Source of the DNA: Klebsormidium nitens
Taxonomy: Eukaryota; Plantae; Klebsormidiophyceae
NCBI GenBank assembly: GCA_000708835.1
Contig: DF236951.1
Span: forward strand, 372,101 to 436,100
DNA length: 64,000 nt
Reading direction: 5' to 3'
This document shows, piece by piece, positions 6,001 through 37,151 of this stretch (position 1 is its first letter; every line of letters starts with the position of its first letter). Under the pieces are notes generated by a model. The model saw nothing but the letters and a program-made list of their open reading frames with translations. It ran no database searches and was not told where the DNA came from. Position numbers and translations under genes: made by a program.

Positions 6001-9000
6001 CGAGGAGGAAGAGACCCTTCTCGCATATGGTGCGGAGCTCCAGGGAGGGCGTGGCAGGGGGCGCCATCTGCGACTGAAAAGAATGACTCTTGATCTAAGC
6101 AAGCGTATGACATGCTGCAAGAAGGCGACTCCTTGGTAGTCGACAAAGACTCTCTCCACAGTATGCTAAGCGACCGGGAAATGCGAAGGGAAGGAGTGGG
6201 GGTAATGTGACGGCGTTGTAAGGACTGTCCAGCTTTACAAAATAGGATCTGTTCCGACTAGTTCCGAATCTAAGATAGTGAGCAATCCAGGAATGGGCAG
6301 CGCTTGTCCACGTTCAAAAGTTTGTCTCATACATTCCCAGTTGGCAATAAAGGCTCATATACAACTCATGGTAGCTCAATGGAAACCCACCTTTCCTGAC
6401 GTAGAGCTCTCCGAGACGGCCTCTGACGAGCACTGGCGCACAAGGAACTCCATGAACGGCTCTGCGTTGTCCACATCGAGATAGTTTGACGCAGCGACGA
6501 CTAGTACGACCTGCAGCAGTGAAGAACACGGTGAGCAGCTTTCCTGCCAGAGAAAGTTCACCTTTGAAATAAGATTGCGAGTCCGACGCATATGACAAGG
6601 AAGGGAACACTGTCGAGGAACTGCAATCTGCTTACCTTCTTTAAGCATGATACTGCAGGCTATCCGAGACCTGTAGTCAGGATAAATCACAGCAGCAAGA
6701 AGAGCACCTTTGACAGGCACTTGTTCATTTCGCGGACTGCAACAACCTGTACGGTTTTGCATTGACTGCGAAAGTTTCAGAGACACACCTGGGCCAACGC
6801 TTTGCGAACCTCCAAGCTCAACTCTTTCAAGAGGCCACCCAGCTTTTCTCTCAAACCTGTCTTCTTGTTCTGCCACTTGTCAGTCAACCTGCAAGGAAGA
6901 GGGTCTCAGCAAGTGCATCCAATGTGTCATCCTTCGACTAAGAACGCCCTTATCGACGTCTTTCGCAGATTCTCGGCCTGTACCGGCAGAGGTGACAGAC
7001 TTCGAGCCAGTACTTCTCCTGGCTGTACGTAAACATGTGAGCGAACAACCACAGCCTCCTAACGATCTCCAGGCTCACCTTGGCAGGAGATGCCGGACAA
7101 GTTCGAGGGCACCGAGTTTGATCATCTCGTCCCGGTTGTCAAGGCGCTGCAACACAGCAACAAACACCCTCATCATCCAGAATGCAACAAAAAATCATCG
7201 AAAAGAAAGAGCACATAGCGCAGTTTCCCATAACAGGGAACCATGCTCCATGGGGTCTCAATTTCAACCAGAAAGTACGATAAATCCGTGGCAGCGACAA
7301 TGCTTACCTGGAGCAAGAAGCCGCACACTTCCTCCGGGAACGCTTGCGCGACGACATCGAAGCTGCGCAGGACCTCGTGGGTGTTTTTCAAGGTGGCGCT
7401 CACGTGTGGGCTACTGCCCCCTCTGGCCGCTGCCATGGGGAGGAGGGTCGTAAGGGTGTACACGACAGCCTGTGCGAAGATGCAAGTAAACGGTCGGTTC
7501 ACCTTCCGCAAGCATTACTTCGACGAACTCTCAGGTGTGTAGCCATCATTACGATGTCACTTTACATCTTCGGAAGAACGGATGATTTCTAGCTTAGGGA
7601 AGCGGACGTGCAGGTACCAGCTCTGATCGAGCGAGCAACAGACGCGATCGCGGAAAAAGCGTTGGAGCCTTTGCTTACATGCAGAGCGTCCTACCTGGTA
7701 ATCAAGCAAGCGCGGGGAGTCAGCCTCGCTCAACGCTGCAGCTAGGACGCTGTGGATGGCCCTCGAGACCGGCAGAGGATCGTCCTCGTGATTCGAGTAC
7801 CTATACACGAAGTGCTGCCGGCAATGAGGGCTTTGGATCGTCGGGGCTCGGAAGAAGCGAGAGAAACGTCCTCTACTGGGTCTACATGAAGCAACAAGGT
7901 TGGGGGCAGCGAAGGAACCAAACTCTTCGCACACCCCATTTACATTGTGCTTTACGGCAGTTTCTCAACCGCAAGGTAAATATCTGGTCGTTCAGCAAAG
8001 CTGCTTTCAAGGGATTGACTCGTTCAAAGCGTCGGACTTTTGCACTGTTCTGCCTGCCCATTTGTAAGCCCAAGTCCGCTCTATAAGGACACAGAGGACT
8101 TACAATGAAAGCAGTGCGTTGAGCAACTTGTGGATTGACTTCTTCAGTTCCTTGCGACCAATGAGTGCACACATTTCGCCGAGAGCTTCCACGGTCGCCC
8201 CTCTGACCTGCAAAGGAGAGGCAAAGTCGATTGATTCTAGCAATTGCTATCCAACCCTGCACGTATTGCACAGGGCTTCCATGAAAAAAGTTGCCTGGAT
8301 CTTTACCACCTGGACATTCGAGTGAACGTCATATCTTTAGAAGACCTCCGAGCATGTCGAGCTTTAAAGCGAATCAAAATTAGAAATCCAAACCTCCTGG
8401 ATTATTGCTTCCTCGATTGCAGAACATCTGGATCGTGTCCAGCTTCGTTGTTCGGCTCACCTGAGGCTCGTTTGCTCGCAGCCAGTAGTACTGCAGGAGC
8501 TCAAAGGCTGAAAAGATGAAGGCACTGCATCAAGATCAAACAGACAGGTGAGGGTAACGTTGTAACTCTACCGCAAAACTATGATATGAAGTCAAGTCTT
8601 TTACAATTGCAACTGGAATCGACAGACTATGGCTAGAGAAGATTGAAGCGTCCAAGTCAGAAGTGCCTCTCCAGCAAACACCACTCCACGACTGTCAAGA
8701 GGTAATAGAACCTCTTTTGCAGTTAAACAAAGGGACGTTAACCTCACCGAGTTTCAGCGTCCATCTTCCATTCTGGGTGTATGTCGTGTTGGTAGTGCGT
8801 GATCGCTCCACACCAGGCAGTAAGTGCTGCAAACAGAATCGTTCCACGATGATAGTCAGTGCGGAGATGCAGAGATGTATTTTGAAGTAACCACGGAAAG
8901 GAGTGCGCTTAGGGTTCGCTCATGACATGTCGAAGAAAATAAGCGATTCGGAACCAACCAAACTCTGATAGGTCCCTTAAGCTCCTCTCTGCGTTTGCAC

Positions 9001-17800: not shown

Positions 17801-20800
17801 ATAAATCCCCCTTGCTCGAGCAAGCTCTCCGTCATGCAAAGTGGGCAGCTTACGACGGCGCCGCACAGCTTGACTAATTCTGCAGACAGTGTCCACATCT
17901 TTTGGAATGATTCAGTCGGCCAGAGAACCTCGGGAATGAACGTGAGTGCCGAGTGACGTGGCTCACCGCCTCTGGAGTGTCCGCAGAGATAGACCCGCCT
18001 GGTGTCAATCTTGGACTTGAGGATGCGACTGCAGGCGGAGAAAAGCCGACAAAGTGTCAATGTCTTAAGGTTCCCCGTCGACCGATACGGGTGAGCGCTC
18101 ATCTGCGGTCCTCAGCAGGCGGAACGCACAATTTCCAAATGGCTGAGGGACAAGCGGCGAGGCTGTCGCTATCGTCCATCTTGTCAACGTCAACAGATTG
18201 ACGGCTCCGACCTGCTCTTTCCAGCCCAAGAGCGGGGGTCAAGCTTACGAGTCTGGTCCTGGTCGCTAACACCTAACGCCCAAATGCACTTTCAGACTGG
18301 CTTCATTAGGTGAAGATCGGACGGCTGTGACAGCGTTTCGGCCATCTCAGAATTGTTCCCTTCGCCTGTCAGGGCCAATGAGAACGCTTGCTTCGATCAC
18401 GTGGTATTAAATGTACAGACCTAGTACAGGTCTCAGCTGGAGCGGTAGTGTACAAAGGTGTACGCGGACTGGGGATGCGAAGCTGGCGAGCCTAGCAGTT
18501 TTCGGTCGACGCAGAACCTAAGGAGCGCCTTGGCAACTCGGACTGTGCTTGTGGGCATAAGCTGACCGGTGCAATTGTTGCCGCAACAAGAGAAAGTTGC
18601 CGGTTGATTTACAAGGTCGTTTACTGCATCTTGGATCCTACCCTTGACCCAATATTGCAAAGGTTGGAGACCTAAACGCCTCGAGAAGGACCTGACGTCT
18701 ACTTTGATATTTCTGCTTTTCTTTCCAAAGGCAACATTCACAGCAACTAAGACACACCAGTTTCTTCTTTTCCTGCTTACCATCTCGAACCAGGACGTTC
18801 AAATTTTCCTATCGAATAGAAGGTCGTAGATGAAACCTCAGTAGAATAGTAGAACCAGTTTCGTGTTTTCCTTCGTAATAAGAACTTCCTATGAGACGGA
18901 GAAGAGGTACAAAAGCGGAATGGTGTCGACAGCTGACCTCTGCTCGGCCCAGGTTATGAGCTCACTGATGAAGCGAGCGGAGAGAACGTCATCCAAGGGG
19001 CCAGTCAGCCCTTCGGCCTGCATACATTCAAAAGCATGGCTGATGAAATACTCCGATTAGAAACGAAGACGGAAACTTCACGGCACACTCGGATCACTCA
19101 CTGCTGGGGCTGATCATCACAGCAGTCTCTATTGTTTTCAAGTCACGCTTCACAGGCGGAAAAGTCTTTACATTCGTGCCAGCAGAGACCGTGATGCAAG
19201 CGATGAAGAGACGTTGCAAGATGCGCTCCGTGGACGAGAAAACCAGGAGAAGCGTTGAGGCCGTGGCTGACGACATCACCGCACGCCAATACCAAATGGA
19301 GGGGCAACTTCGGAAGACTCGGAAAAAACCGGACGAAATTTGATTTCTTTCTTTGAACCGCGAGGTTCCATGTACAGAAGGGCATCTTCAATTCACATTG
19401 CGATGTGAGAGGATATGCAGGAGAGAAAGGGAAGACACTCAGAGTAACAAAGTAACACCGAACGAGCAGGGTACCTTGTTGTAGGTCAGTACGACATAGC
19501 CCCAGCTGGCCAGTCTGTCTGCGTAGCTCTGGTACTGGTCGGAACTGACAAGGAAACCGCCTGAGAAAATGGCAAGGGGGTATGGCTGCATGCAAAGGGA
19601 GAAGTTTTAATTTCGTGCTGTGCAGTCTACGAAAGGGGGGGATGATGCCAATGTCAGATGAGCGTTTACCAAGACTGTGCTTCAAAATTCCAAAACTTTA
19701 GTAAGACAGTCATTTCACCGTGACTGATCAGAACTGACTTTGTAGGGTGACCCTTATGAAGCAGGGGCATGGGCTTGGCGCTTGATGCAAACCAGGTCCT
19801 AAAAAACTGCGAGGAACCTCCTTTCATAAGTGAGACGCATATTGATGTTCCTCGGTGTTTCCTTGCGTTTCCTCAGCTTCCTATATGGAGCTGGAAAGAT
19901 GAGCATTAGAAGCCTCATTAAGTGTCAGGATGAGGTTGACAGCCACCAGAAAGTATATTGAAGCATATCTTCCCAAGGAAAAGTCATTTACCACTAGCCC
20001 CTCCACTGACATGCTCTCCATCATATAATACTTCTCAAGCTGACTGCGTTGTACAAACGTTGTTGTACAAGTACAAAGCTTGAACTGTCCGGCGCGCTCA
20101 CTTCATGTCCTGAGCGCCCATTGCCTGGGTAAGTGACCTTGATCCGCAGCAAGCACCCCCCTGCACATTGCTTAATCACCGAGTTACTGTTCTGCCTCTC
20201 TTGCATAAGGTGAAGCTCAAGTGGAAGCAATTGCAAGCTTGTGCTTGTGACTAGCATCAGTGGTGGTGGTAAGCCCGCTTTCTGATACTCCCTTTTCTCA
20301 AGCTTTCACAAACACCAAAAGTTCAGGGGCTGAGATATTCCTACGTGATACCTGTCCCACCTGCCTGCAAACCAGAACCAAAATGACCTGATGAAAGCAA
20401 CTGAAGCCTTTGATATGGGCAGTACTTTTCTTTACACCAGTGCACGTACACAGGAAAGAAGCAGCCACTTGGCTCACCATCAACACATTGAGGGTAGCAA
20501 TTGGCGCAGGTGTGCTCAAGAACTGTCGGCAGCGTTCTGATGTCATATGGCCCTGCTTTTGTGTAGTCGACCAGCAGGTCTTGGCTGCCAACCTCTTTAC
20601 GGACTTTCTCAGCATTGCGCTCCCGAATCACTTCTGCCGGCTGCTTCTCTTCCTCTGGTTCAGCTTCAGAAGATCCTGCCGCCACCAGCGATAGGATGCT
20701 AGCCCCAAGGGTCAGCATTAGCTGCCTTTTGCTCAAAGTTTGCAGGTTCCGAAGCCCCAGCATGGAATCATGTTGTTTCTGAGACTGCTCTTTGTTGTGC

Positions 20801-21222
20801 TCCAAGCAGAATAGAGCATTCTGGTGGCTACACTTGCATCTTTCTCGACACCGCCCATCCCCAGGACTCAGCTTCAGTCTATCAATTGAAGCTTTCCTGA
20901 TGACCTTGTCCTCTTTCCTACACCAGGGAAGCTGCATGGAAAGTCTGGGGCTTTGCAGGCAACACCGCTGACCGCCAACGGGGTCAACTGGTCGAGCACC
21001 AATCTGTTTTCGTTGAGTACAAGGACAGCATTCCCTGGCATTGGCATGACTGCCCGCTTCTAACCTCGTCCAATGCTGCCAATTGGCCGGCGTTCTTCGC
21101 AGGAGGGACGACATGGGCGCAACAAAGGCTTGTATCAGACACCTCTCTTCCAAAATTCTTCCAATTTCTAGTGAATGACAGATCGACTTGAAGGCCCAGG
21201 AAAGGCCTTCACACTTCGCCAC
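14837..21222 (-). CDS. Chlorophyllase-like alpha/beta hydrolase with bipartite plastid/thylakoid-lumen targeting; 9 exons
   Basis: Exons join in phase: 21222-20475, 20160-20102, ~19585-19475 (PYPLAIFSGGFLVSSDQYQSYADRLASWGY), ~19012-18934, ~18028-17966 (VYLCGHSRG), ~17446-17369 (GKISVLAAAQDQRVAALCLLDPVDNT), ~16860-16654 (VYAPLAPGYPSA..GGDCAPPDANY), 16217-16124 (WEVVIREAGHFQFVD), 15493-14837. The Ser-Asp-His triad motifs GHSRGG / DPVD / GHFQF are present. The start could also be the Met near 21114. Confidence 0.8.
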
Positions 21223-23302: not shown

Positions 23303-26300
23303 CTACTCTCCGAACGGGAACGTCTCCGGCGGTTCGTCCTTGGGCATGGTCCATTTTTCGCCCCACTCAAGGGGCTCCAGGGCGCGGGTCCAGTCCAGAT
23401 GAATGACACGATTGAATTGCTGGGCGACCTGCCAAGGAGCAGATAATACGAGCTTTTTTTACACAAACGCAATTACTTTTGCTGGGCCACATAGAATGGT
23501 TGATCAGGAAAACTGAGTAAGATATCCCGTGCGCATGGGGAAGGGACCTTCGCTAGCCACTTCGGAAGAAACTCGTACGAAAAGATCGGCGTCAGAGACG
23601 GAGCATGATCCACAGCCGAGGGGAAGCCGGATAAGAAGCCCGGCAAATCCAGACGGATAGCTGCTGCCAAAGTCGGGAAACTTTTCCCGATCGATTTGGT
23701 AAACCTTGAAAGACGAGGACGTCTTCTGGTTGAACGTCATGTAAGAGGACACAAAGCTGCAAGCAGAAAGTAAAAGAGGGGCGCTCTTCCTGTGGATCCT
23801 GCTTCCGTCTGACCAGCTCTGCTGGCGGCTGGTGATTGTTTGAACATTGAAAATCTCTTCGACAGGTGCTGAGAAAATTACTCCGAAGTTCTCGTAAGGT
23901 CGGGCGCAGAGAACAGGTCGTCTAACGCTGTCAGACGCTGCCGCATCCAAACAGGGATCCGTGAATAAAGTTCGTTTAAATTTCTGCGTGTTCAGTCCTT
24001 TCAGTTCTCTTCTTACCCTGTCAATGCGCAAAGACCAGTCTGCGCCCTCGCACGGCAAACGCTTCATAAGTCGAACGGACGAAACCTCCCCTGACAGCAA
24101 AGTCGAATGCCACAGCTCAAGAACTAGTAAGAGGTGGGCGGTTGAGCATCCCCGGTCACTCACCCGTGCCTGGAAGTAGTGGCTGAAGCGCTCGGTGTCA
24201 GCCCGGTAAATGACCCCGATCGCACGCTCCAGGAGCTCCAGGTGCTTCGGCACGTGATTGCTCACATCAAGCAGGAAGCGAGACGGCGACACCTGGCAGA
24301 ATGTCGAAAGATTGGTATGGTCAGGGAGCCGCTTCGGAAACGTCCCGGGGGTTGGAAAAGGGGTCTCGAAGGTGAGTAACTGAGTCCAGTTACAGAAAGT
24401 ATTTCAGCGCTTCAGGGATCACTGTGTGGTGCAACGTTTTCAAAACGGTTGAAACGACGACTTATTCCCCCAACTTAAAAACTTGATTGAGGGTTTTGGA
24501 GAAGGACCCACCTTGTGAAAGAGCCGCTCGAAGCTCCCGGCCATGCCCTGGTTGACCTTCATGCAGTGTGCGGGCTCGCCCCAATCATAGGCCGCCGTCA
24601 CCGTCCCCGTATACGTGCTGCATACGCAGGGTACCGGGAACGGGCGTCACGTCGGGCGCTACAGTTAATGATCTGGGGTCCGCTTGACTCAACTAAAAGT
24701 TGCTGGACAGGTTCGATCAGACTCGGTGATTTACCTTTTCGCCAAAAGTCTGCAGAATGACATTAGGTAAGCCTATTTTGCCCTTGCATAGTAGCCTCCT
24801 TCCTGCAACCTTGAAAATCCCATAACGTTCCTTCTCCTGGAAAGAAATTCATCCATAGAAGCGCGACCTTTAGTTGCTTTCCAAACCGAATCTGGGGGTC
24901 ATGATGCAGACTCAATTTACTTTCAAACAGTAGCCGTGCGCGCACCTGAAGCCGATGTTGAACGCCTTTTCCTTGTAGTGCTCGCGCACGAGCTGGCCCA
25001 CGTTGAGCTCCTTGCGGCGCCAGCTCATGTCCGTCGCGCGCGCGTCGCCCAGGTGCGAGTTGTGCGCCCACACCACCGTGCGTGCAGGGCTGCCGCTCAG
25101 CCGCTCGCAGTGCGCGATCAGCGCTGCAAGAGAAGGACGAAGTTGAGGGAAGAAACGAGAGGAAGAAAGAATATTGCTGTTGCAAAAGAAGGATTCATTG
25201 CGCTCGAGTAACATTTCGAGGAATCAACACAATCCGGAGAGTTTGGGGCATAGAGGATCGGCAAAATCCGCAGCAAGTCAGTCACGCAATCAGTACTCCC
25301 CCTGAGAAGATCAAAGTCAGATCCCAACCAGCAATGCTGATGTTTCTCTGCTACGAATTATGGAAGGGGGGCAAGTCAGTAGAGGCAAACTGAACCATCT
25401 TTGAAAAAGTTCTTTGGTCGGAAGAAAGCAGAACGCAAATCGCTGAGATCAGGGCGCTAGTCAGGGGACCATCTTCAGGTTAATGGAAGGAAGTAAGAGG
25501 TTGTCAACCTGAAAGTGGACCGATCGAGAATTCGTAACCGGACTCATTGAGCCCTGTAGATTCCAGGAGCCCGTTTATGCTGTTGCTGTTGCTCGTGAAG
25601 AAGGTGCGTTGACGGGGCGTTAAGAACCCAAGTCATCGACAACGTGTTCGAGATTTCAGAATCTCGCTCAATGCCTTCAGCAGCAGACTGTGGATCGTAC
25701 TGAATTTCCAGATCTCTGATCGTTCAACCGTTCAGGGTCGCCCGCGTCATACCAAGCAAGTAGTCACAAGATGGGAATTGATGACGAAGTGCAAATTCTT
25801 ACCTTTGAGCGTGTTGAACATGTGCTTGTCCCGGAGGTTCCAGCTCATGTCACGTGCCCGGTACATCGACCGGTAGTACTGCTCCGCGTCTTTCACCACG
25901 AGGGCATTCTGCAGCGGAGAAGCGGCAGCACTTCTTGATCTGAAACCAATTAAAGTTAGTACATTCTTGAGACGGATGAATTTCACGAAACCAGATGCCG
26001 AAAGGAAGTGAAGAAATCAGAAGGCACGCACGTCAAAACCGGAAGGGCCTGCCAGAATATATACGTAAGCCTTTGATCTGTGGATCAATCTGGCCTCTGA
26101 TTTATCTGTATTTCACACTCAACTCAAACCCAAATTCACTTTCCCCACACTTTTTGCCAGCCGCTTTAACACTGCGAAGCGAGAATAGACTTCCTGAACT
26201 AAAAATGGAGTGTATTCCACCTAACAGCTCCCTCCCTGGCCCTGGACCCAAAGTCGTAGTCATCAGTCCCTTCGGACCCCCATAACGGCTCCCCCGCTTA

Positions 26301-29300
26301 CCTGCACCGCGAAGAACTGCTCGTCCTCGTGACACGTGGCGTCCCGGTCGTGATTCGCGGAGCGCAGCTTCTCGGGCGCCAGGCGCATGAGGTCTTTAAG
26401 CACTTGGACGACTTGGTCCTCGCACGGGTCGGCTCCGCCGGCCGTTGTCGCCAGCCCGTACAGCTGTGGGTCGCGCCCGAAGTGGTCGAAGCACGAGTAG
26501 CGCTTCCTGTATGCGGTGGACGTGGAGAGCATAAGAGATGAGCGGAGGGGCGGGAGATGAAAGTTTGCATGAAGCATGCGACAAGTTACTGACAAGAGAT
26601 GTTGAAAGAGGTGCCCGAAGTGGTCGAAGCACGAATAGCGCTTCCTGAAGGAGGATATTCGTGGAGAGCATGAGAGATCCCGCACGAGCATGAAGGGAAA
26701 CATACCGAGGCAGAAGGAAAGATGTGAACGTAGCGCTTCGTGACGACTGAACCGCGGGCGTAAGGAATGAGGCTGAGCATGGACAGTAGGTACCAAATCA
26801 GAAAAGAAAAGGGTGTGGGATCGAGAAGCTGTGGGCACCGCTCAAAGTGGTTGAAGTGATCCGCGCTGCGCTTGCGAAACCATTCTGTCCGCTTTTCACA
26901 ATATTCTCGCAGTAAGAAGGTTGAATTCCAGATCTGAACCTTTCTATGCAAAGCGCACCTCTTCTAGATATCGGGCGTGCTCATGCACGAACGGCCCGTG
27001 AAGCGATACAGCTGTACGTTTTTTGGCTTAACGATTTGACGCCACATCCTCGCGCACCAACTGCTGTCTTATTATTCGAAATCAGTTGCATTTGGTGTGG
27101 CTAACTCCCCTGGTCAGCCTTGAGGTGACAGCTGACCTGCTGAAGTTGATAGGAAAACCCAAAATTCAAGAAGGTATCATCCTAATTCTCGAAGTCCAAC
27201 GGAAAAGTGCTGTAAGACTTACTTGGTGCGCTCCGCCGTATCTGGGTCGACTTTCTCGAGGTACTCAATGACTGCCTCCATCGACTTGTGCAGGCTGTAC
27301 AGGTCGAAGCCGTACAGACCCACCGTAGAACTGCGAAATTTCGAAGACTCGAGAGATTTATGTGGGTCTATAGTGTGTGTCAAAGAGGCTATTATACAGA
27401 AGGCAAAGTCTGACTGCTAACCGCCACAGTTGAAGTATCTTGAAACCACTGCAGAGAGTCGTGAGCAAAGAGCTTCGTGAGGGCTCCACCTTTAAGACGT
27501 CTTTCATGTAGAACGATCTTTTCTTCTGGCGGTTCGGAATCGGACAGTAAAGGGAAAAAGGAGTCGAAAAGCTTCAAACGTCCTTTTGTAAGCAGAAGAT
27601 GCCGCTCATTGGTTTGCTGAACCCAAAACGTCCTTTTGATTAAAAGAGACGTGCGCACGATACTGGCGTGATAATGCAGAATCTCTTTGAGGTCACCTAT
27701 ACCTGCTTCAACCAGAGAGCAAAATAACTGGATGTTCCGATTGCCCTGTCCGGAACCGGAAAGCCTGGCCGGAACCAAGAGCCCAAAGGCGGTAGCTGTC
27801 AAGGACAATCAGCTTACGTGTTTTCAAGTTTCTCGCCGGCCCGCTCCTTCGCAAAGATCTCCCTGCACAGTGGACAAGAAACAGCCATTGTCAAAAACCC
27901 TTTGCCACAAGTTAAAATCGTCGGACTACGTATCGTTAGGAAGAACCTCAGGCCCTGGCGTAAAAGGCGAACCGCGCAACCTCTTCAATCTGCAAAACCT
28001 TCCAGTTGCGATCGCAGGCACTCTTTGGATCCGATCAGACAAATGCTTCCAGTTTCAGACCATGGCTAGGGGGAACGGTCTTTATCCAGTATTTTCAGCC
28101 AATTGAGCGCATATAGCTCTGATCACACCTTCTGTATCCGTTTTCATGCAGACGAGCTGAACCTGCACCTTCCCGGCCAAGCCGTGGTCCAAAGTTATGT
28201 GCTGCACAAAATCTTCGCAGAATGCTGAAGCTAAAAACTTTCATTGGCCAATCAAAGAGCCAGAGTCTACCAAGTCGAAGTCGGTTGGAAGTCCTGCGCT
28301 CAAGATTCCTACGAAATCAGGTTCTGTTGCGCATTGACATTTTGCTTTGAGCGGCTGGGGTTGACCAGTCATCGTCAGATTTCAACACGCAAGACACCCA
28401 CTCCTTCTGCCAAAGCCACAAAAAGCAATCTCGTTCACCGTTGAAACCCACTGGTTCTGCCAAACCTGCAGTTAGTGAGTTCATCTCCGCGTAAAACTCA
28501 CTGGTTGAGTTCAGTAACATTAAGAGCACGTGTTTCACTCACTGGTTGTGTTTCTTAGCCCACTCCACGAAGTCCACCATGACGGTGTTGCGCCACATCC
28601 AGGTGGGGAACCTCTTAAACCCCTCGAGCGCCTCCGCGGCGCTGCCGTCGCCCTTGAGGCCGCGCACGTAGCGGTGCGCGCGCGCCATGTCGGGCCAGTC
28701 CGCCTCGCACACCACCATGGAGAAGCCCTGCACGACGCGTGGCGCGTTCTGGTTGGTGGGATCCATAAAATGATATGAAGCACTTTGGAGAGATTCGAGC
28801 GGGGTGATACATAGTAGGTGAGCGTGCACATGTCAGTGAATTCGCTTCAAAGAGATTGAAGCCAAGCTCGACCAAGCTTGACTCGTAAGTCGAACAACTT
28901 TCGTGGATCGAGGAGGCAACTGAGAAACAGACGGCTCTCTGTACCTTCGCAAATTCCAACTCGCCCCCAGAAGAAAAAGAAACCCACTTCCCCGAACAAA
29001 CCACCAACCCAGAAAGACGTCAATGGAATCCACGACTTGAGCCCCCGCACCTTTTCCCGACACGCCATCTGGTGACCTTGGCCAGATACTCGCGAAAGTC
29101 AGCTCAGAGGGGATCAGTTCACCCCCTAAAGTTTTCAAAGAAGCCACCACAAACCGACAAGCCTCGCACCTTTTCCTCGACAAGCCGCTTGGTGATCTTG
29201 GCCCGTTGCTCGTAGGGAGCCAGTTCAGAAGGGATCCGTTCACCCCCTTCCAGGATCACAAAAAGCTACGAAAAATCTCGGCAGAACTCGTACCTTTTCC

Positions 29301-30816
29301 TCGACGAGCCGTTTGGTGATCTTGGCCCGTTCCTCGTAGAAGTCGTGCGTCCCGTGGCTGGCCTCCCCGATCAGAACCACCTGCGCATCGCCGATGTCGC
29401 GCAGCAGTCCGTCGTAGGCCTTCTTCGGGTCTCCGGACAGCAGGACGATGTGCGGCTGGATCTTCTCCTCCATCTGGACGTCCGCAGGGCTGACCGCTTT
29501 GCTACGAGAATTCGGACGAAGACAACGTCGGAAAAAGTAATGGAAGCCCAACAGGCTTTGGTAGTTGAGACGGATCTTTTTGGGGTCTCCGGACCGCAGG
29601 ACGATGTGCGGCTAGATCTTTTCTTCCATCTGGGCGTCCGCAGGGCTGATCGCTTTGCTGCAAGAACTCGGACGGAGGATTTTGTAGATCCTTTTGAAAA
29701 CGGCAAAGGTTGGAGGGCTTCGGAAGTTGACACAGTGATTATGAGACAGCAGGACAGTTTGTGGCTGGGTTTCGCCTTCGTATGGACGTCCGCAGGGCTG
29801 ATTGCTTTGCTGCAGAGAAAGCGGACGGTGGAATTGTCAATCAAATGACTCGAAAAGATTGAAACTTGTGGTTGGGACGGATCTTGTCGGGGTGACCAGG
29901 ATGTGCGGCAGAATAAGCTTCGCCATTCGGACGTCCGTAGGGCGTCCTGCTTTGGCTGGACACTTCAGCTTTTACGTTTCCCCTAACATGCACATGCAGC
30001 AATGAGCATGCAGGTCGACAACTAACAAACAGAGCATGTAACGAGAGCAAAAAGTAGGAGGCACAAATTCTTTTTCAGAGCTACAGGGAAAGGGAACGGT
30101 TTGTTGAGAGCAAACGCCGTGCGGTTGCTTTCCTAAGATGTTTGATTCGGCAAGCCTTGCATGCCTAGGACTCCATGCGTTGATCCTGAAATCAAATTGC
30201 TTAAGGGAGAGGGTTCTCTCGAAACAGCGCCAGACGTCCTTTCTTAACAGGGAAACGGCTAGCAATGCATGCTTTCTTTTCAGCGGACAGCGAAGCAGTA
30301 TCCTTCTGTTTCTCATACATACACGCATGTCACCAGTTGGCTTTGGAAAGATTTAATCCAATTCTATTCCATACATCTTCCTATTAAAAGCACTCAGCGG
30401 TATGCCAGGAACGTACCCTGTAGTCCCATGCACACTGCATTTCCAGAAAGAAAGTATAAATAAAATGCTTCTTACCTGAAGAAATGAACGAGAGCCGAAA
30501 AGATTGCTGCTCTCAGGCTGACAGCCGTTTGGCGCGGTGCAGAAAAGCTAGGCTCCCCAATCTGCAGCTGACTTCGAGGTCGGATGCTTCTCCTCCTTAT
30601 ATCCTTCCAGCCAGCTTGTAGCACCCTTCGAAGGCTCCTTCCGAGTCCTGCTTCTTCAGTAGCTCTGCTTTCAAGCCCTTGATTCGTCAGCAGAGATTTG
30701 GCTGTGAACTTCCTCTCAGGTACCAAAGTTGAGTCGGACAGCAGGCGGCTTCCTTGTCCAAGAGAAAACGACGCGGTTAGCTGGTTCATAAGCAAGCGCT
30801 TGGCAGAGCACAGCAT
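23303..30816 (-). CDS. Erythromycin esterase-family protein (bacterial type) with N-terminal organellar presequence; 10-11 exons
   Basis: Exons 30816-30476, 29501-29294 ([28 protein letters not shown]), 28727-28543 ([30 protein letters not shown]), possibly ~27989-27931, 27330-27223 ([11 protein letters not shown]), 26506-26302, 25908-25803 (SWNLRDKHM), 25123-24946 ([15 protein letters not shown]), 24617-24512 ([12 protein letters not shown]), 24292-24164 ([20 protein letters not shown]), 23428-23303 ([20 protein letters not shown]). All joins are GT-AG and phase-consistent. Confidence 0.9.
26470..26880 (-). repeat. Serial intronic copies of the acceptor plus 5' end of the ERE-like exon starting at 26506
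   Basis: Real exon start cag|GAAGCGCTACTCGTGCTTCGACCACTTCGGGC at 26506; near-identical copy with its own cag at 26644; more degenerate copy near 26830-26875 (translates [18 protein letters not shown] versus [17 protein letters not shown]). Confidence 0.85.
29041..29340 (-). repeat. Serial intronic copies of the 3' end plus donor of ERE-like exon 2
   Basis: GGCCAAGATCACCAAACGGCTCGTCGAGGAAAAG|gt at 29294 is repeated with a GT donor at 29170 (close copy) and at 29051 (more diverged copy). Confidence 0.85.
29430..29960 (-). repeat. Serial intronic copies of the acceptor plus 5' end of ERE-like exon 2 (~150-bp period)
   Basis: ag|CAAAGCGGTCAGCCCTGCGGACGTCCAGATGGAGGAGAAGATC at 29501, with copies starting at 29657, 29809 and ~29954. 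Confidence 0.85.
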
Positions 30817-31942
30817 GGCGAAAGCTGCTCTAGGCGCGCATTAGGTTCCTGCGGTCTCTGGTTCCAGCGCTCTGCCCTTTGACTGAAGATGCATGAGCAT
30901 TGCTACAAGTCCGAGGTCGAAGTATACTTACGTGCTTCGCAGACATTATATCCCTGGATGGCAAAATCTGAAGCAAAGAGGATCAATTCAACAAGATGCT
31001 CTCGTCCTCTTGTTTTGCTCGCAGACGCCAGTGCAAACCATTATGTCGAGTTCAAGACTTGGACAACCAAAGCTCAGGTCTTTGCCTCGGCTTCTCGTGT
31101 ACGTCTCGAGGTTCGAAGCATGGATTAAGATTAGATCGTGCATGGATATGGTTGTCTGACGACTTAGAGTTGATCCGTTTCGCTTACTGTAGACGTCGAA
31201 GCAGTGCTTGCAAGCTCGTGTGTTAAGAAGACTGCTCATGCTGCTGCATGAAAAGGCTTCGAAGAGAAGATCAATGCTCTTTCTGGCCGATGAATGCAAG
31301 CACGAGATCGAAGCTCTAGCTGGCAGTTGCTGCGCAGGAATTCATGCATCGAAGCACATGAGAGCGCATGGCGTCCGCCGCTATGCTGATTTACCTTGGA
31401 TGCTGCTGACAACTGGGACACCTGATCGAGTGTGTGCGCAAGCACCGGTTAGGCGCACCACTCTTTACGGGTCACCATAACCCTGATTCCTGGAATCCTC
31501 AGCGTCTATCTCAGTCGTTCAATTCATCATCGAACGGGTGATGTTTAAAGTTTTATAACACGTGGTTTCGATGCGGCGACCCGAGCTAGCCATAACCAGG
31601 TAGGTTAAACTTGACTAGCTGCACGGGATAAAACTGACGAGTGGCAAGCCCAGAAGGCAAGACCTGGAAATGGCCAGGCGTTCACAACGTTCAATCTTAG
31701 ATCGATCGCATTACTAATTCACAAGCAAGCTAGCAAGCAAGCAGGTCTTCTCAGATGCTGCAATATCTTCCTACAGCCTGTTGTTAGAGGGCGGTAATCT
31801 GTGTGCTCTCTACGCATTTCACACACGCTCCTGCTTGGCATTGATAGGACGAAGTGACAGAAGATCACGTCGGCCTTAATCAGCATTGTTGATTGTTGGA
31901 TTGGTAGCCGCTTTGTGTGGGTGCAGATAGCAGCTGCTTACC
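30817..31942. promoter_or_regulatory. Probable shared divergent promoter region between the ERE-like gene and PPT
   Basis: Head-to-head arrangement of start codons at 30816 (-) and 31943 (+). No specific element was identified. Confidence 0.35.
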
Positions 31943-34900
31943 ATGGCCATGGTTGCATCAATTGCCCGGTCCAATGCCGCAACCGGGATCACAACGTGCT
32001 CCGCATCGCACCAGAAGGAAAGGAACTGTGGCAGGGCATCACCTGCATTCTTCAGATCCCCACCACTTGCAGCCAAGCAGACTGTTTCACCACACAAGGT
32101 CTTGTGTTCCTCATTCGCTGGGGTTGAAATCAAGATTCCCTCTAGGCCCCTCAGCAGACAGACGAAGGCAGTCGACAGAGTTCGGTGCCAGGCAGCAGCT
32201 GGAGGGGAAGAAGCGGCCCCTCTTGAAATTCCAAAGGTTGAAACCCCAAAGGAAACCGAGCTCACGAAGACTCTGCAGCTAGGGGCCCTCTTCGGCGGGT
32301 GGTACTTGTTTAATATTTACTTCAACATCTATAACAAGCAGGTAAGGCAATCACAGCACATAACGAATGCCCAATCAACCGCTCAACAGAGATCTTGTCA
32401 AAAAGCAGGGCCTGAAGTTGGGGAGTAGTGAGGAACTGTGAGTTGAACAGTTCCATTGATTGCTTCCGCAGGCGCTCGGCTTCTGCTTATTTTCTTGGAG
32501 AGAGATGCACTCTCAAATGTCAATCAGTTCATCCTCTTGCAGCAAGATCTGCACTTGCCCAGAATCTTTGGCGGGTTCGCTTTTTGTCAGATCTCAGACG
32601 ACTAGATATCATAGGACTGCTAGCATTCAACTTGAGGTAAAGCAACAACATAAGCGCTCAGCTTAATGGAATGATACACCAAGTCTGCTTTCTGCTGCGC
32701 TGTTCCAGACTTGATGCCCTGCCCCTCACATGTGGCCACATTGCTACCTCAGCAAACTGCCTGAACACACAAGTCGACTCTCGGTCCGCCTATGAACACA
32801 AGGCCACACAAATTCGATTGCCTTGAGGAGGCTACAGCCCTTGATGCCGCGTATATCTTTCTCATAATGGACTGGCCTCCGTTAAAACCGTCAGCGCGAA
32901 TCCCAAAGAGCTGTCAGGAACACTGTCAGAGTAGAATAAGTAACTGAAGAGAAAAACACACCAACCATACTGTGAATTGATACCTCTGCAGGTCCTCAAG
33001 GTGTTCAAGTTTCCCATAACCTGTACGCAAGTGCAACTAGGCGTGGGGCTTGTCTGGTCCCTCTTTATGTGGGGCACAGGCCTGTACCCAAAGCCCAACA
33101 TCTCCAGAGACCAGGTAGGATAATCTGACTGCTCTCTTTCTCCGATTGTAGCCCCAGCATCAGATCTTGGCGAGGGGCATAGACAAAGTCCTCTCAGAGG
33201 GAGGCGGGCGATGGATGTACGTCAAGGGGATTGGTCGCAGTGGTCAAGCTGGGACCCTCACTACGATCTCGGACAGTATAATTTGTTGAAACTTGAAGCT
33301 TGAAATAGGTTAAATCGAAGCCAATGAGTTAGTGGTGGAATGCGTCTGCGCTTGCGTTCTGATCTTGAATGCCTTTTAATACCCCTCTTCATTGACCTTG
33401 CAACCGCACATTTCCCTTTTCTGTGGCAGCCAATGAAGATCGTGCACCCGTCTCTCTTACCATGATAGTCTCTCTCCCTTGTCTTTTGCAGCTGATCGCG
33501 ATCACGCCGCTAGCTCTCGTCCATGCGCTGGGGAACTTGTTTACCAACCTGAGTCTGGGCAAGGTCGCCGTCTCATTCACGCACACCATTAAAGCGATGG
33601 AGCCGTTCTTCTCGGTGCTACTCTCCAGCATCTTCCTGGGAGACGTGAGCGGCCAATCGCAACACTGAGGCTTGGAAGGACTTACTTGGAGGACTGCTTG
33701 GAAGAATCACCTGAACAAGTCACCCGAATCGTGCTTCAGTCGGGTTTCTGAAAGTCTTGCATTTTTTGGCTGGCACCTAAACGACAGGCAGTTCTTGTAC
33801 TACCGAAGGAAGTCGCAAATGCTCAGCATGGAAAGAAAGTTGAACTCTTTGTGCTTGCAGAAACCGCAACTACCAATCGTTTTGTCTTTGCTGCCAATCG
33901 TGGCCGGCGTCGGGCTTGCATCCGCAACGGAAGCCTCCTTCAATTGGTGAGCCATCCGCTTCCCTTCGACGGGGATGCAGCGCAACATGTAGTCAAGTGC
34001 TGCCCAACACAGATCTCTGTCGGGAGGGGTTCTTCGCCTAAGAAGCACGCCTTTGAGCTTTTCAAGTCGACAAGTTGAGGGCTTTCGAAGTTTGCAGTCT
34101 TGGAGGTTTGCAGAGTCATTTAGTCAGTCGACCTCATAGGTGTTGCTTGTTTCTGCTCAGCCCAGCACTAATAGAACGAGGACTGTTTCAGTCTGCTCAG
34201 GTTTGCTCTGAGCCTGGCGTGTCTGCTTGACTAGACTTTGATAGTTCTGTATGCTATACACTCTGTCAGTCACACTTCCTCTCGTCCAATTTCGAAGAGA
34301 CGTGGACTGAGATCCACAATCCACTCACACGATGTAAAGGACCAATACGAATGCTTCCAACAACCAAATGCTCGACATCGAGCCCCTTTTTGCTCTAATA
34401 GGCTGTGGATCTGGAAAGTAGCCACGTCATCGTGATCCTTTCCCTGCGTTTTGAACGTCTTTGCAATTATCGCCAGGCTAGAATCGATCGGGCTCCAGAC
34501 TTGAACCCAGAAGCAGGTGACGGACGCAATCAACGTCAGCGTGCTTTTCCAGTGCTTACTCGTATCTTGCGTCGTCGCAGGGCGGGCTTTTTGAGCGCCA
34601 TGGCCTCCAACCTCACCTTCCAGTCGCGCAACGTCCTGTCAAAGAAAGTCATGGTCAAGAAAGAGGTGAGACTTCTCGCGAGCATGTTCAAATGCATACC
34701 TAGGAGACCATGTGATAAACTGGCATCTGTTAGAGATGTGTCAAAGTACCTCGTAGTAACATCGGTGAAAATGGAAAAGAGAGACAAAACAAAAACAAAA
34801 AGACCATTGCCGGCCGCCAATTACTTTCACGTTGAGTAGAAGGATGGAAGCCGCATCGGTTCGTCTCTGCTTGCAACACGACAAGCTTGAAGTTCGGGAG

Positions 34901-37151
34901 CTTTCCAATTACCTGGGGAACAGTAATCGCCGAAATGGTTCAAAGGCTCTTGGAGAGCATATTGATCGTGTCAGCATTTGGGCTTCCACCATTTTCGAGC
35001 GATAATGACATACCTTCGAAAACTTTTGTAGTACAGAGCTGTTCCCGTCGCTACAAGTGCCTGTATAAACTGAAAGAACTTTAACTCGTCCCAACAACGG
35101 AGGTTAAAGTAATACCTGGTCGTTGCGTGAATTGGCAACCAGTCGCATCTGTCACCGCGGCCACCGCAAGGGAGGAATCCATAGGAACTAAAGGCTGGAA
35201 CACTTGCATCGACAGGACCCACGAGGTTCTGTGCTGATAGGATCGCAAGTGTACGCTCTGCAGCACCCTCTGGCCAGCCCGTCCTTTCTGCAATTGTTGC
35301 CTTCATTCGTCGAGCAAGAATATGTTCGTTGTTTGCAGAAGTCCTGAACACCAGCCACGTGTCCGATTCGATTACGGTCATAGCCGTCCACTGTCGACAT
35401 TCCTTTGAGTTGGGTGCGTCGTCTGCTCTGCAGGACCTTCCGGTCAACACCAACATATCCCCTTCCATCGTGAATGTAAGACTCATCTGTCGAAATTTCC
35501 TGATACAGCGGTATGATTCTGCTCTGCAGGGGTCTTTGGACAACATCAACCTGTTCTCTGTCATCACCATTATCGCCTTCTTCCTCCTCCTTCCGCTGAC
35601 TCTTGCCACGGAGGGCGTCAAGCTGACGCCAGCATACCTGGAAGCAGCGGTAAGCAATACATCCCAAACCTGAAGCAAAGCAGTAAGCAGCGGGCGTTCA
35701 GGTGTCTGGTCCTGATAAGCTTCTGACATGCTCATGCAGGGTCCGTCTTGTCTTGGCTTCTTTTTGAATATTCTTACGGCATAAAGGGGAGGGTTTTGAG
35801 TAGATTGAAATGGGACAATCATTCCGCCGTCTGCGGATCTCTCCGCTTATGCGTCCGGCGGTTGCGGGCTCACGAGGATGACGTCATTGTCGCCCTGTAT
35901 CGCTGCAGGGATTGGACGTGAAGCAGGTGTTGACACGTGCCCTCCTCGCCGGCTTCTGCTTCCACGCCTATCAACAGGTAAGCTACAATAAGGCAATACC
36001 CAGAGGTATTTAGTAATCGCGGGATCGGCCGCGATCTGGCTCCACGCTCCCATCAACATCTGGGTTTTGAATATTGGATATGACGGTTACGAGGAAAGTC
36101 GTCCAGAAAGCAAAACTTCGCAAGTGCAATTTCAAACTTCGTCCGTTCTCCGCGAAACATGACGTCAAAACAGCGATCCAAGCCGCATTCTAGTATCGAC
36201 TCGATAAGCCGACATTTGTTACTGCCCGGTTCGCTCCCCCCGGTTGCTTTCGCCCCCTTGATTCCACCCGGTTGACCTCCCCGGGGCCTCTCCAGGTGTC
36301 GTACATGATCCTGTCCAAGGTGACGCCCGTGACGCACTCGGTCGGGAACTGCGTGAAGCGGGTCGTCGTCATCGTGACGTCAGTGATCTTCTTCAAGACG
36401 CCGGTGTCCGCCATCAACGCAGTCGGTACGTGTCCCCCCCTCGACTTCCCTTGTGCAGAAACTATCCAGGCTTTCAATGAGAGTTTTTAGCTTTCTCGCA
36501 ACTTCTGCGTGCGCTGGAGCTTTGCGGTTCTTTAGTCTCTCTCCAAGCGGTCGGTGCGTCTCTTGGCCTCACTTTCTGTGGGTCTTATCTTCTCGGCCTC
36601 ACTCGCTCGGTCTTGGCTTTTTAGATTACTAGAAGTTCGAGGCCTTCGGTGATATTATCTGATTTCCTTCTTTCCTTGTTATTGCCCAGCTCCTAGTTAA
36701 CCTAGCTTGATGAAAAAGCTCCTTGAAGTGACTGTCAATTAAGGAACTTAGACTGCCCTCTCTGGCTTCCTTTGATTCTCATTTGAGCGCATGTCAATGC
36801 TGTACGCGTCAATCACTAGAATCAGTAGCGCTTGCTAAGGCGACATCTCGGCGTCTTTCATCTCTGTTTAATGAGAGGCCGATATTCCGGCGTAAGCAAT
36901 CAGAGAGATGAAGGTTCTGATATTCTTGTATCAAACACTGCTGGCCCGGTATATGAATCCAAGCAATCGTGCCGATACATCAAGCTGAACCCAAATGCAT
37001 CCTGCCGAGAGGAAGATCAACTATCCTTGGAAAAGATGAGCTTCTAGCCAGATGTACCTCGTTTTTTGCAGGTACGGCCGTGGCTCTCTCCGGCGTCTTC
37101 CTGTATTCACGAGTCAAGGCTTCGATGACGAAAAAGGAAAAGTTGGCTTGA
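31943..37151 (+). CDS. PPT: Plastid phosphoenolpyruvate/phosphate translocator, 9 exons, with transit peptide
   Basis: [14 protein letters not shown]|[43 protein letters not shown]|[28 protein letters not shown]|[26 protein letters not shown]. These are PPT-type rather than TPT/GPT-type wordings. All junctions are GT-AG and in phase. Confidence 0.92.

Follow-up and report, generated by a model that had tools for sequence, protein, structure and literature searches.

The DNA analysed here (the window) is a stretch of 64,000 nucleotides from contig DF236951.1 of the streptophyte alga Klebsormidium nitens, and one locus on its minus strand, between positions 30816 and 23303, raises the question of whether an alga has taken over a bacterial-type erythromycin esterase (Ere) and directs it into its organelles. 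The original prediction, made from the sequence, described a full-length Ere-family gene split by introns and preceded by a separate 113-codon exon resembling a mitochondrial or plastid presequence, and it proposed an old horizontal acquisition that might protect organellar translation from macrolides. The reading that we consider likely, though well short of certain, is that the locus is an annotated nuclear gene for an Ere-family hydrolase of bacterial ancestry, which starts at ATG 29473 and encodes no targeting peptide. The feature that would have distinguished the gene, a presequence placing a macrolide-degrading enzyme in organelles, fails to hold up. The gene itself is not new, as it is already annotated and Ere-family genes are known in other algae and in fungi.

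The locus corresponds to KFL_000020660 (P0291), a 455-residue protein annotated as a K. nitens hypothetical protein in record DF236951.1 (assembly GCA_000708835.1) and labelled 'Erythromycin esterase' in UniRef. Retrieved by a word search seeded with one exon, the protein maps without mismatch to 10 exons separated by 9 GT-AG introns on the minus strand, from 29473 to 23303. Seven separate open reading frame (ORF) pieces of the locus match Pfam family PF05139 collinearly, covering profile positions 4-348 of 358, and two bacterial family members (from plasmid records) align to it in nine collinear blocks. Coding exon 1 (29294-29473; this and all following exons are on the minus strand) begins with ATG 29473 and the residues MEEKIQPH and carries the GEASHG motif (E37, H40); it is defined by the exact KFL_000020660 map, by a GC content at third codon positions (GC3) of 0.88 and by tblastn matches with bacterial homologues. 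The exact map, Pfam and tblastn agree on coding exon 2 (28543-28727; GC3 0.95), with EADW (E68) and RFPTWMWRN, and on coding exons 4 (27223-27330; [12 protein letters not shown]...), 5 (26302-26506; [10 protein letters not shown]...), 8 (24512-24617) and 9 (24164-24292; RAIGVIYR...). The same three lines of evidence, together with homologue alignment, define exon 6 (25803-25908), which contains WNLRD (R267), and exon 7 (24946-25123), which contains WAHNSH (H297, H300). Exon 10 (23303-23428), ending in the stop codon TAG at 23305-23303, is found by tblastn and the exact map. Exon 3 is a mini exon of 45 nt (27818-27862; [15 protein letters not shown]; GC3 0.73) that the exact map places between cag/G and AC/gtaag splice sites; it was missed by homology-only gene models, which joined 28543 straight to 27330.

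Upstream of the start codon, 28 nt (29474-29501, minus strand) lie between the acceptor tcgtag/C at 29501 and ATG 29473, and these are probably 5′ untranslated region (UTR) at the head of coding exon 1. This assignment is supported by L003, a metagenomic contig of a related alga, on which the corresponding acceptor stands 23 nt upstream of the ATG, and by the fact that acceptor and exon start form a unit that is repeated upstream of coding exon 1. One further intron, located 5′ of the start codon and ending at 29501, would thus be added to the nine in the coding region. These data bear out the original prediction in three respects: the gene is a full-length member of the Ere family, as the PF05139 pieces, the bacterial alignments and the exact map all indicate; the motifs [19 protein letters not shown] and WAHNSH are both present; and its count of about 10 spliceosomal introns is fair if nine coding introns and a single putative 5′ intron are taken together.

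KFL_000020660 matches the whole PF05139 profile (1-358 of 358) at 408.3 bits, against a cut-off of 26.4. An AlphaFold2 model built with 43 homologues reached a mean pLDDT of 92.2 and a pTM of 0.92, and Foldseek aligned it, over about 445 columns in each case, to BcR135 and BcR136 of Bacillus cereus with TM scores of 0.70-0.81 and to EreC with TM scores of 0.61-0.71. The modelled structure is the two-lobed Ere fold, with a major alpha/beta lobe and a helical minor lobe. In EreC, E47 and H50 serve as the base and its support, E78 and H289 coordinate water, and R261 stabilises the transition state (PMC7979712). The counterparts of this set in the algal protein are E37, H40, E68, R267 and H297/H300, an equivalence drawn from motif and spacing (E37 and E68 are 31 residues apart, like E47 and E78), not from residue-level superposition. 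An alignment of the 43 homologues shows no variation at H40, E68 or R267 and conservation of 90% or more at E37, H297 and H300. Because the catalytic residues of EreC are kept, KFL_000020660 is expected to hydrolyse esters or lactones, and it would do so independently of metal, by way of a water molecule activated by His and Glu. Many close bacterial relatives (L001 610-2658; P0384, P0414, P0421, P0139) join a phosphoribosyltransferase domain (PF00156) to an Ere domain in one protein, which may hint at the natural substrate of the subfamily to which KFL_000020660 belongs.

Where did the gene come from? After KFL_000020660 itself, every one of its best 120 matches is a prokaryotic or metagenomic protein, 54-58% identical along almost the whole length; the 120 include neither a K. 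nitens paralogue nor a protein of any other eukaryote. A search with the exons found, as the best full-length match among cluster representatives, a protein of the zygnematophyte Mesotaenium endlicherianum (ME000268S04601; EukProt, P0016), whose own best matches are bacterial. No other eukaryote occurs among the best 120 matches of either algal protein, and land plants turned up in neither list. A careful maximum-likelihood tree was computed with IQ-TREE from 50 sequences and 449 columns under LG+C20+F+G4 by PMSF. In this tree the K. nitens and Mesotaenium proteins are sisters with support of 98/93, and the pair is in turn sister to a bacterial pair (89/89) and nested within a clade of soil bacteria. 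The contig that encodes the sister bacterial pair consists of tightly packed bacterial genes in an operon-like context. Quick trees concur at lower support (SH-aLRT 80-93).

That the algal gene is integrated in its host and is not a contaminant is indicated by its nine spliceosomal introns, its plant-type neighbours and the 530-kb scaffold on which it lies; the homologue in L003 likewise stands beside a gene of the plastid triose-phosphate/phosphate translocator (TPT) family. Judging from the sequences compared, an old transfer from bacteria to a streptophyte alga probably took place before Klebsormidiophyceae split from the lineage leading to Zygnematophyceae, this being the direction and age that the tree suggests. 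The old horizontal acquisition that had been proposed is thus probably right, given the nesting among soil bacteria, the 98/93 clade with Mesotaenium and the ordinary algal genes on either side, and the phylogeny with which the original prediction was to be checked, its eukaryotes limited to two, places the algal pair inside a bacterial clade.

The start of the protein is the point at which our reading parts from the original prediction. The candidate 113-codon exon (30476-30816, minus strand) is an ATG-initiated ORF that ends in CAG/GTAAGA and is in phase with the acceptor at 29501, the joined ag and c completing a Ser codon. ORF, donor and phase are therefore as had been described, whereas a presequence-coding role is opposed by the ORF's absence from the annotation, its lack of codon periodicity and its lack of conservation in the nearest relative. 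GC content at its three codon positions is flat (0.54/0.53/0.52), compared with GC3 values of 0.73-0.95 in the ten coding exons (0.86 overall), the introns of the gene having 48-52% GC. Since GC3 alone is a weak criterion, the exon of the neighbouring TPT gene having a GC3 of only 0.47-0.67, base make-up was also compared between codon positions, in a test that needs no training. The chi-square for the candidate exon gave p 0.18; among 25 equally long intron windows the median p was 0.40 and none fell below 0.05, four coding chunks of the same size gave p 2e-7 or lower, and the TPT transit-peptide exon gave p 0.017-0.043. Nor does the amino-acid make-up of the candidate peptide depart from that of random codons of equal base make-up (p 0.11), and there is no shortage of acidic residues (7 Asp plus Glu observed, 7.9 expected). 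Richness in Arg, Ser and Leu had been taken as a sign of an organellar presequence, but these are six-codon amino acids and such a composition is what random translation yields by default. ORFs of this kind are common: the window holds 77 ATG ORFs of at least 90 codons, mostly with GC3 like that of non-coding DNA.

Comparison with other sequences points the same way. The candidate exon is absent from the annotated protein, which begins MEEKIQPH at 29473; it has no homologue in the L003 contig; and the Mesotaenium protein model has no N-terminal extension. In L003 the start Met is kept (RMEEDLRPY), with a stop codon four codons upstream of it and the acceptor 23 nt upstream. Bacterial homologues align from their first 10-20 residues, and so also begin near ATG 29473. 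A metagenome scan with the exon-1 peptide returned a single match (L010), a contig with a bacterial GGDEF gene that was hit off frame, and this was set aside as chance. The distribution of ATG triplets is informative as well. Between 30788 and the donor at 30476 all frames are free of ATG (p 0.05), whereas ATG density is normal upstream, with one 25 nt upstream of 30816 at 30841 (a 3-codon upstream ORF) and more at 30894 and 30900. This pattern fits a 5′ leader starting downstream of 30789 better than it fits a coding exon. On our reading the ORF at 30816-30476 is open by chance and lies within or close to a first exon that does not code, and the segment is most likely non-coding, either as part of a 5′ UTR exon or as no exon at all. 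That it is translated at all seems doubtful to us, and a working targeting signal is rated lower.

Several observations weigh against a gene of transferred bacterial origin that starts at ATG 29473. The in-phase frame of 113 codons stays open in only 1.1% of dinucleotide-preserving shuffles (p 0.011) and has a strong donor at its end; a transcript with its start upstream of 30789 would have in-frame first AUGs (30816 and 30789), from which the extension would be read. Both algal proteins sit on long branches (0.91 and 1.09), and the K. nitens protein deviates in composition, so that the sistership could be long-branch attraction. The tree holds two eukaryotes, with K. nitens paralogues, the haptophyte, dinoflagellate and fungal homologues and the L003 homologue left out. 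Finally, RNA evidence for any exon was sought and not found: the locus occurs in none of the sequencing runs listed, the 24 that bear the same species label having a share of 0.00, and contigs from four runs were compared, of which none was placed on 24901-30900, although without a control gene in that interval the blank is uninformative. The first of these points feeds the alternative in which splicing joins 30816-30476 to 29501 and translation yields a precursor of 578 residues (455 plus 123) that bears a mitochondrial or plastid targeting peptide. In addition to the open frame, the CAG/GTAAGA donor and the fitting phase, this alternative gains from a candidate peptide with no acidic residue in its first 27 positions and a net charge of +11, and from a location in the right place, 1.1 kb from the divergent TPT gene. 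Random-like sequences can act as presequences, and a missing coding signal is compatible with a young extension; in a variant of this alternative the extension is young and lineage-specific, or belongs to one isoform made from an upstream transcription start. It is opposed by the annotated protein, which lacks the segment, by the low GC3, absent periodicity and random-like composition, by the missing homologue in L003 (where a stop precedes the Met) and in the metagenome scan, and by the ATGs at 30841, 30894 and 30900, which require that a clean leader for ATG 30816 be shorter than 25 nt. On these grounds we regard a translated presequence as unlikely. Were an N-terminal extension recently recruited from the non-coding 5′ DNA at 30816-30476, through an upstream start that sends part of the enzyme to mitochondria or plastids, organelle targeting of a transferred bacterial enzyme would have been caught in the act of arising; we see this as a very slim prospect. 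With the presequence goes the premise of organellar protection from macrolides, which is left unsupported; the protein is also distant in sequence from the proven EreA-D esterases, and no evidence here links KFL_000020660 to macrolides. With the NCBIfam model of EreB (NF000209) the protein reaches 23.2 bits where the cut-off is 750, and no model of EreA, EreC or EreD matches it. Klebsormidium lives in soil crusts, and one may ask whether its protein is nonetheless a genuine macrolide esterase by which erythromycin-type antibiotics of soil actinomycetes are detoxified. The Ere fold and every residue required in EreC/EreB catalysis are present, and a similar claim has been made for a haptophyte homologue (PMC4580454). 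The distance from the EreA-EreD models is matched, however, by that from EreC itself, which phmmer retrieves no better than at E 1.4 and whose structural alignment with the algal protein shows 15-16% identity. The closer solved relatives BcR135/136 are described as esterases that act on p-nitrophenyl butyrate and presumably serve succinoglycan synthesis, not as macrolide esterases (PMC7979712), and the frequent phosphoribosyltransferase fusions among close bacterial relatives point to a different substrate. Macrolide detoxification is accordingly rated as highly unlikely.

Two other histories would also account for an Ere gene in two algae. Klebsormidium and Mesotaenium may have acquired their genes separately from related soil bacteria, with long-branch attraction producing the sistership. 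The branch lengths and the flagged K. nitens composition would permit this, each algal protein is about as close to bacterial ones (up to 58% identity) as to the other (53%), and the quick trees give the pair no more than SH-aLRT 80-93. The site-heterogeneous model of the careful tree nevertheless retains it at 98/93, and a possible intron position shared at exon 5/6, though only suggestive, also favours common ancestry of the two genes; separate acquisition seems to us distinctly improbable. Alternatively, the gene may be an ancient eukaryotic one, inherited vertically and lost in most lineages. Reports of PF05139 genes in haptophytes, dinoflagellates and fungi, and the intron-rich structure of the algal gene, are in its favour. 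Such a history does not sit well with the bacterial character of both match lists, from which other eukaryotes, land plants among them, are missing, or with the nesting of the algal pair in one bacterial subclade at 54-58% identity, and we hold it to be very unlikely.

Returning to the transfer from bacteria, the following course of events would account for the locus. A soil-bacterial Ere-family gene would have been acquired by an ancestor of streptophyte algae and would have evolved fast since, gaining its nine coding introns after the transfer. A short intron in the 5′ UTR would end 28 nt before ATG 29473, much as in the related alga. Translation would most likely begin at that ATG, where the bacterial homologues begin, and a start there implies a product that lacks a targeting peptide and is presumably cytosolic.

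The Mesotaenium model bears on the history of the introns. It contains three low-complexity insertions (residues ~60-170, 190-290 and 345-415) that resemble introns read through as coding sequence, and the third falls within one codon of the K. nitens exon 5/6 intron, so that this intron position may be shared.

In L003 the esterase homologue extends from the exon with the start codon to the last exon, at 40-82% amino-acid identity to K. nitens in the exons searched, which did not include the 45-nt mini exon, while the TPT exons of the two algae are 79-88% identical in DNA. At L003 9700-9740 the motif reads GGATHG in place of the GEASHG of K. nitens, so that the counterpart of the Glu assisting the catalytic His of EreC is lost. 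Together with the 40-82% exon identity, this change suggests relaxed or shifted constraint on the L003 copy. TPT and esterase genes are arranged head to tail on one strand in L003 (1-12800) and head to head in K. nitens (24900-36000); the difference in orientation implies that one of the genes was inverted after the two algae diverged and that a breakpoint lies in the 5′ region of the esterase. Just upstream of the intact L003 gene, at 7459-8212 on the minus strand, are decayed, stop-ridden, inverted copies of the first two esterase coding exons, which are perhaps a relic of a rearrangement.

On the K. nitens scaffold the esterase gene lies between two ordinary plant-type genes. The TPT family gene (31943-36000, plus strand) is transcribed divergently, begins 1.1 kb from the candidate exon and has a visible transit peptide; a chlorophyllase-like gene (20341-21222, minus strand) lies downstream. 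The codon bias of the esterase is specific to the gene, with a GC3 of 0.86 (23303-29473) compared with about 0.55 in the neighbouring TPT exon (31943-32428). Strong translational selection or a compositional legacy is a possible source of the high value.

Several introns of the esterase gene contain copies of their own splice junctions. The 5′ intron holds three decayed copies of the acceptor and exon start (minus strand, 29603-29657, 29755-29809 and 29900-29954), which are 91%, 67% and 75% identical to the real unit at 29447-29501. In the copy nearest to coding exon 1 an ATG is followed by a stop after five codons, so that its use would give a poison exon. The next intron holds two copies of the exon end and donor (minus strand, 29163-29215 and 29043-29095; real unit 29287-29339), and the intron upstream of exon 5 holds copies of the acceptor and 5′ end of that exon (minus strand, 26613-26654 at 90% and 26827-26856 at 80%). 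The units stand in tandem: across 29043-29954 the acceptor unit of coding exon 1 occurs four times with a period of about 150 nt and the donor unit three times with a period of about 120 nt, and across 26475-26856 there are two to three copies of the acceptor and start of exon 5, spaced 138 nt from each other. Such arrays suggest that the introns lengthened when segments spanning a splice junction were duplicated in tandem.

The uptake of bacterial genes by the algae from which land plants arose is being actively studied, and an Ere-family hydrolase common to Klebsormidium and a zygnematophyte would add a candidate gene for adaptation to soil. Our literature search returned no paper on Klebsormidium erythromycin esterase genes and likewise nothing relevant under streptophyte terms; one match to 'PF05139' proved to be a Plasmodium gene name and not the Ere family. 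The candidate exon carries a lesson for GC-balanced genomes, in which an upstream, in-phase ORF rich in Leu, Ser and Arg resembles a transit peptide by default.

KFL_000020660 can be compared with five groups of known proteins. Its nearest counterparts are soil-bacterial Ere proteins of about 440 residues (Verrucomicrobiota, Chthoniobacterales, Acidobacteriota and Candidatus Baltobacteraceae), metagenomic and uncharacterised, which are 54-58% identical over 95-100% of their length and share its size, motifs and Pfam domain. The algal gene differs in its nine introns, its eukaryotic chromosome and its long branch, and in lacking the N-terminal phosphoribosyltransferase domain found in some of the bacterial members. 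The Mesotaenium protein (ME000268S04601), its sister in the tree at 53% identity, has the same motifs and, in its model, no presequence; that model, the sole basis for the differences given here, has 633 residues and no counterpart to the part encoded by K. nitens exons 3-4. Among solved structures the best relatives are BcR135 and BcR136 of B. cereus (PDB 3B55, 2RAD, 2QGM; 'succinoglycan biosynthesis protein'), found at E 4e-16 and 5e-13. Both lobes and the GExxHG, E-x-x-W and HNxH motifs align with the algal protein, whereas identity is 18-20% and the two belong to another bacterial subfamily. EreC, EreA and EreB (PDB 6XCQ, 6XCS; NCBIfam NF000209) share the Ere fold and the catalytic residue set, EreC differing by the low structural identity and the weak phmmer score given above. 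Within eukaryotes, a fungal secretome includes a PF05139 protein (PMC7299934), an Ere-family gene is among the candidates for horizontal gene transfer in Fugacium kawagutii (PMC11453091), and in Chrysochromulina tobin the expressed nuclear gene Ctob_004084 (523 residues) is an Ere-family member that its authors read as a macrolide defence (PMC4580454). The Chrysochromulina and Fugacium genes belong to other algal lineages and are set beside KFL_000020660 by their published descriptions only; like it, they are of bacterial type, lie in the nuclear genome of an alga and keep the catalytic residues (PMC4580454, PMC11453091).

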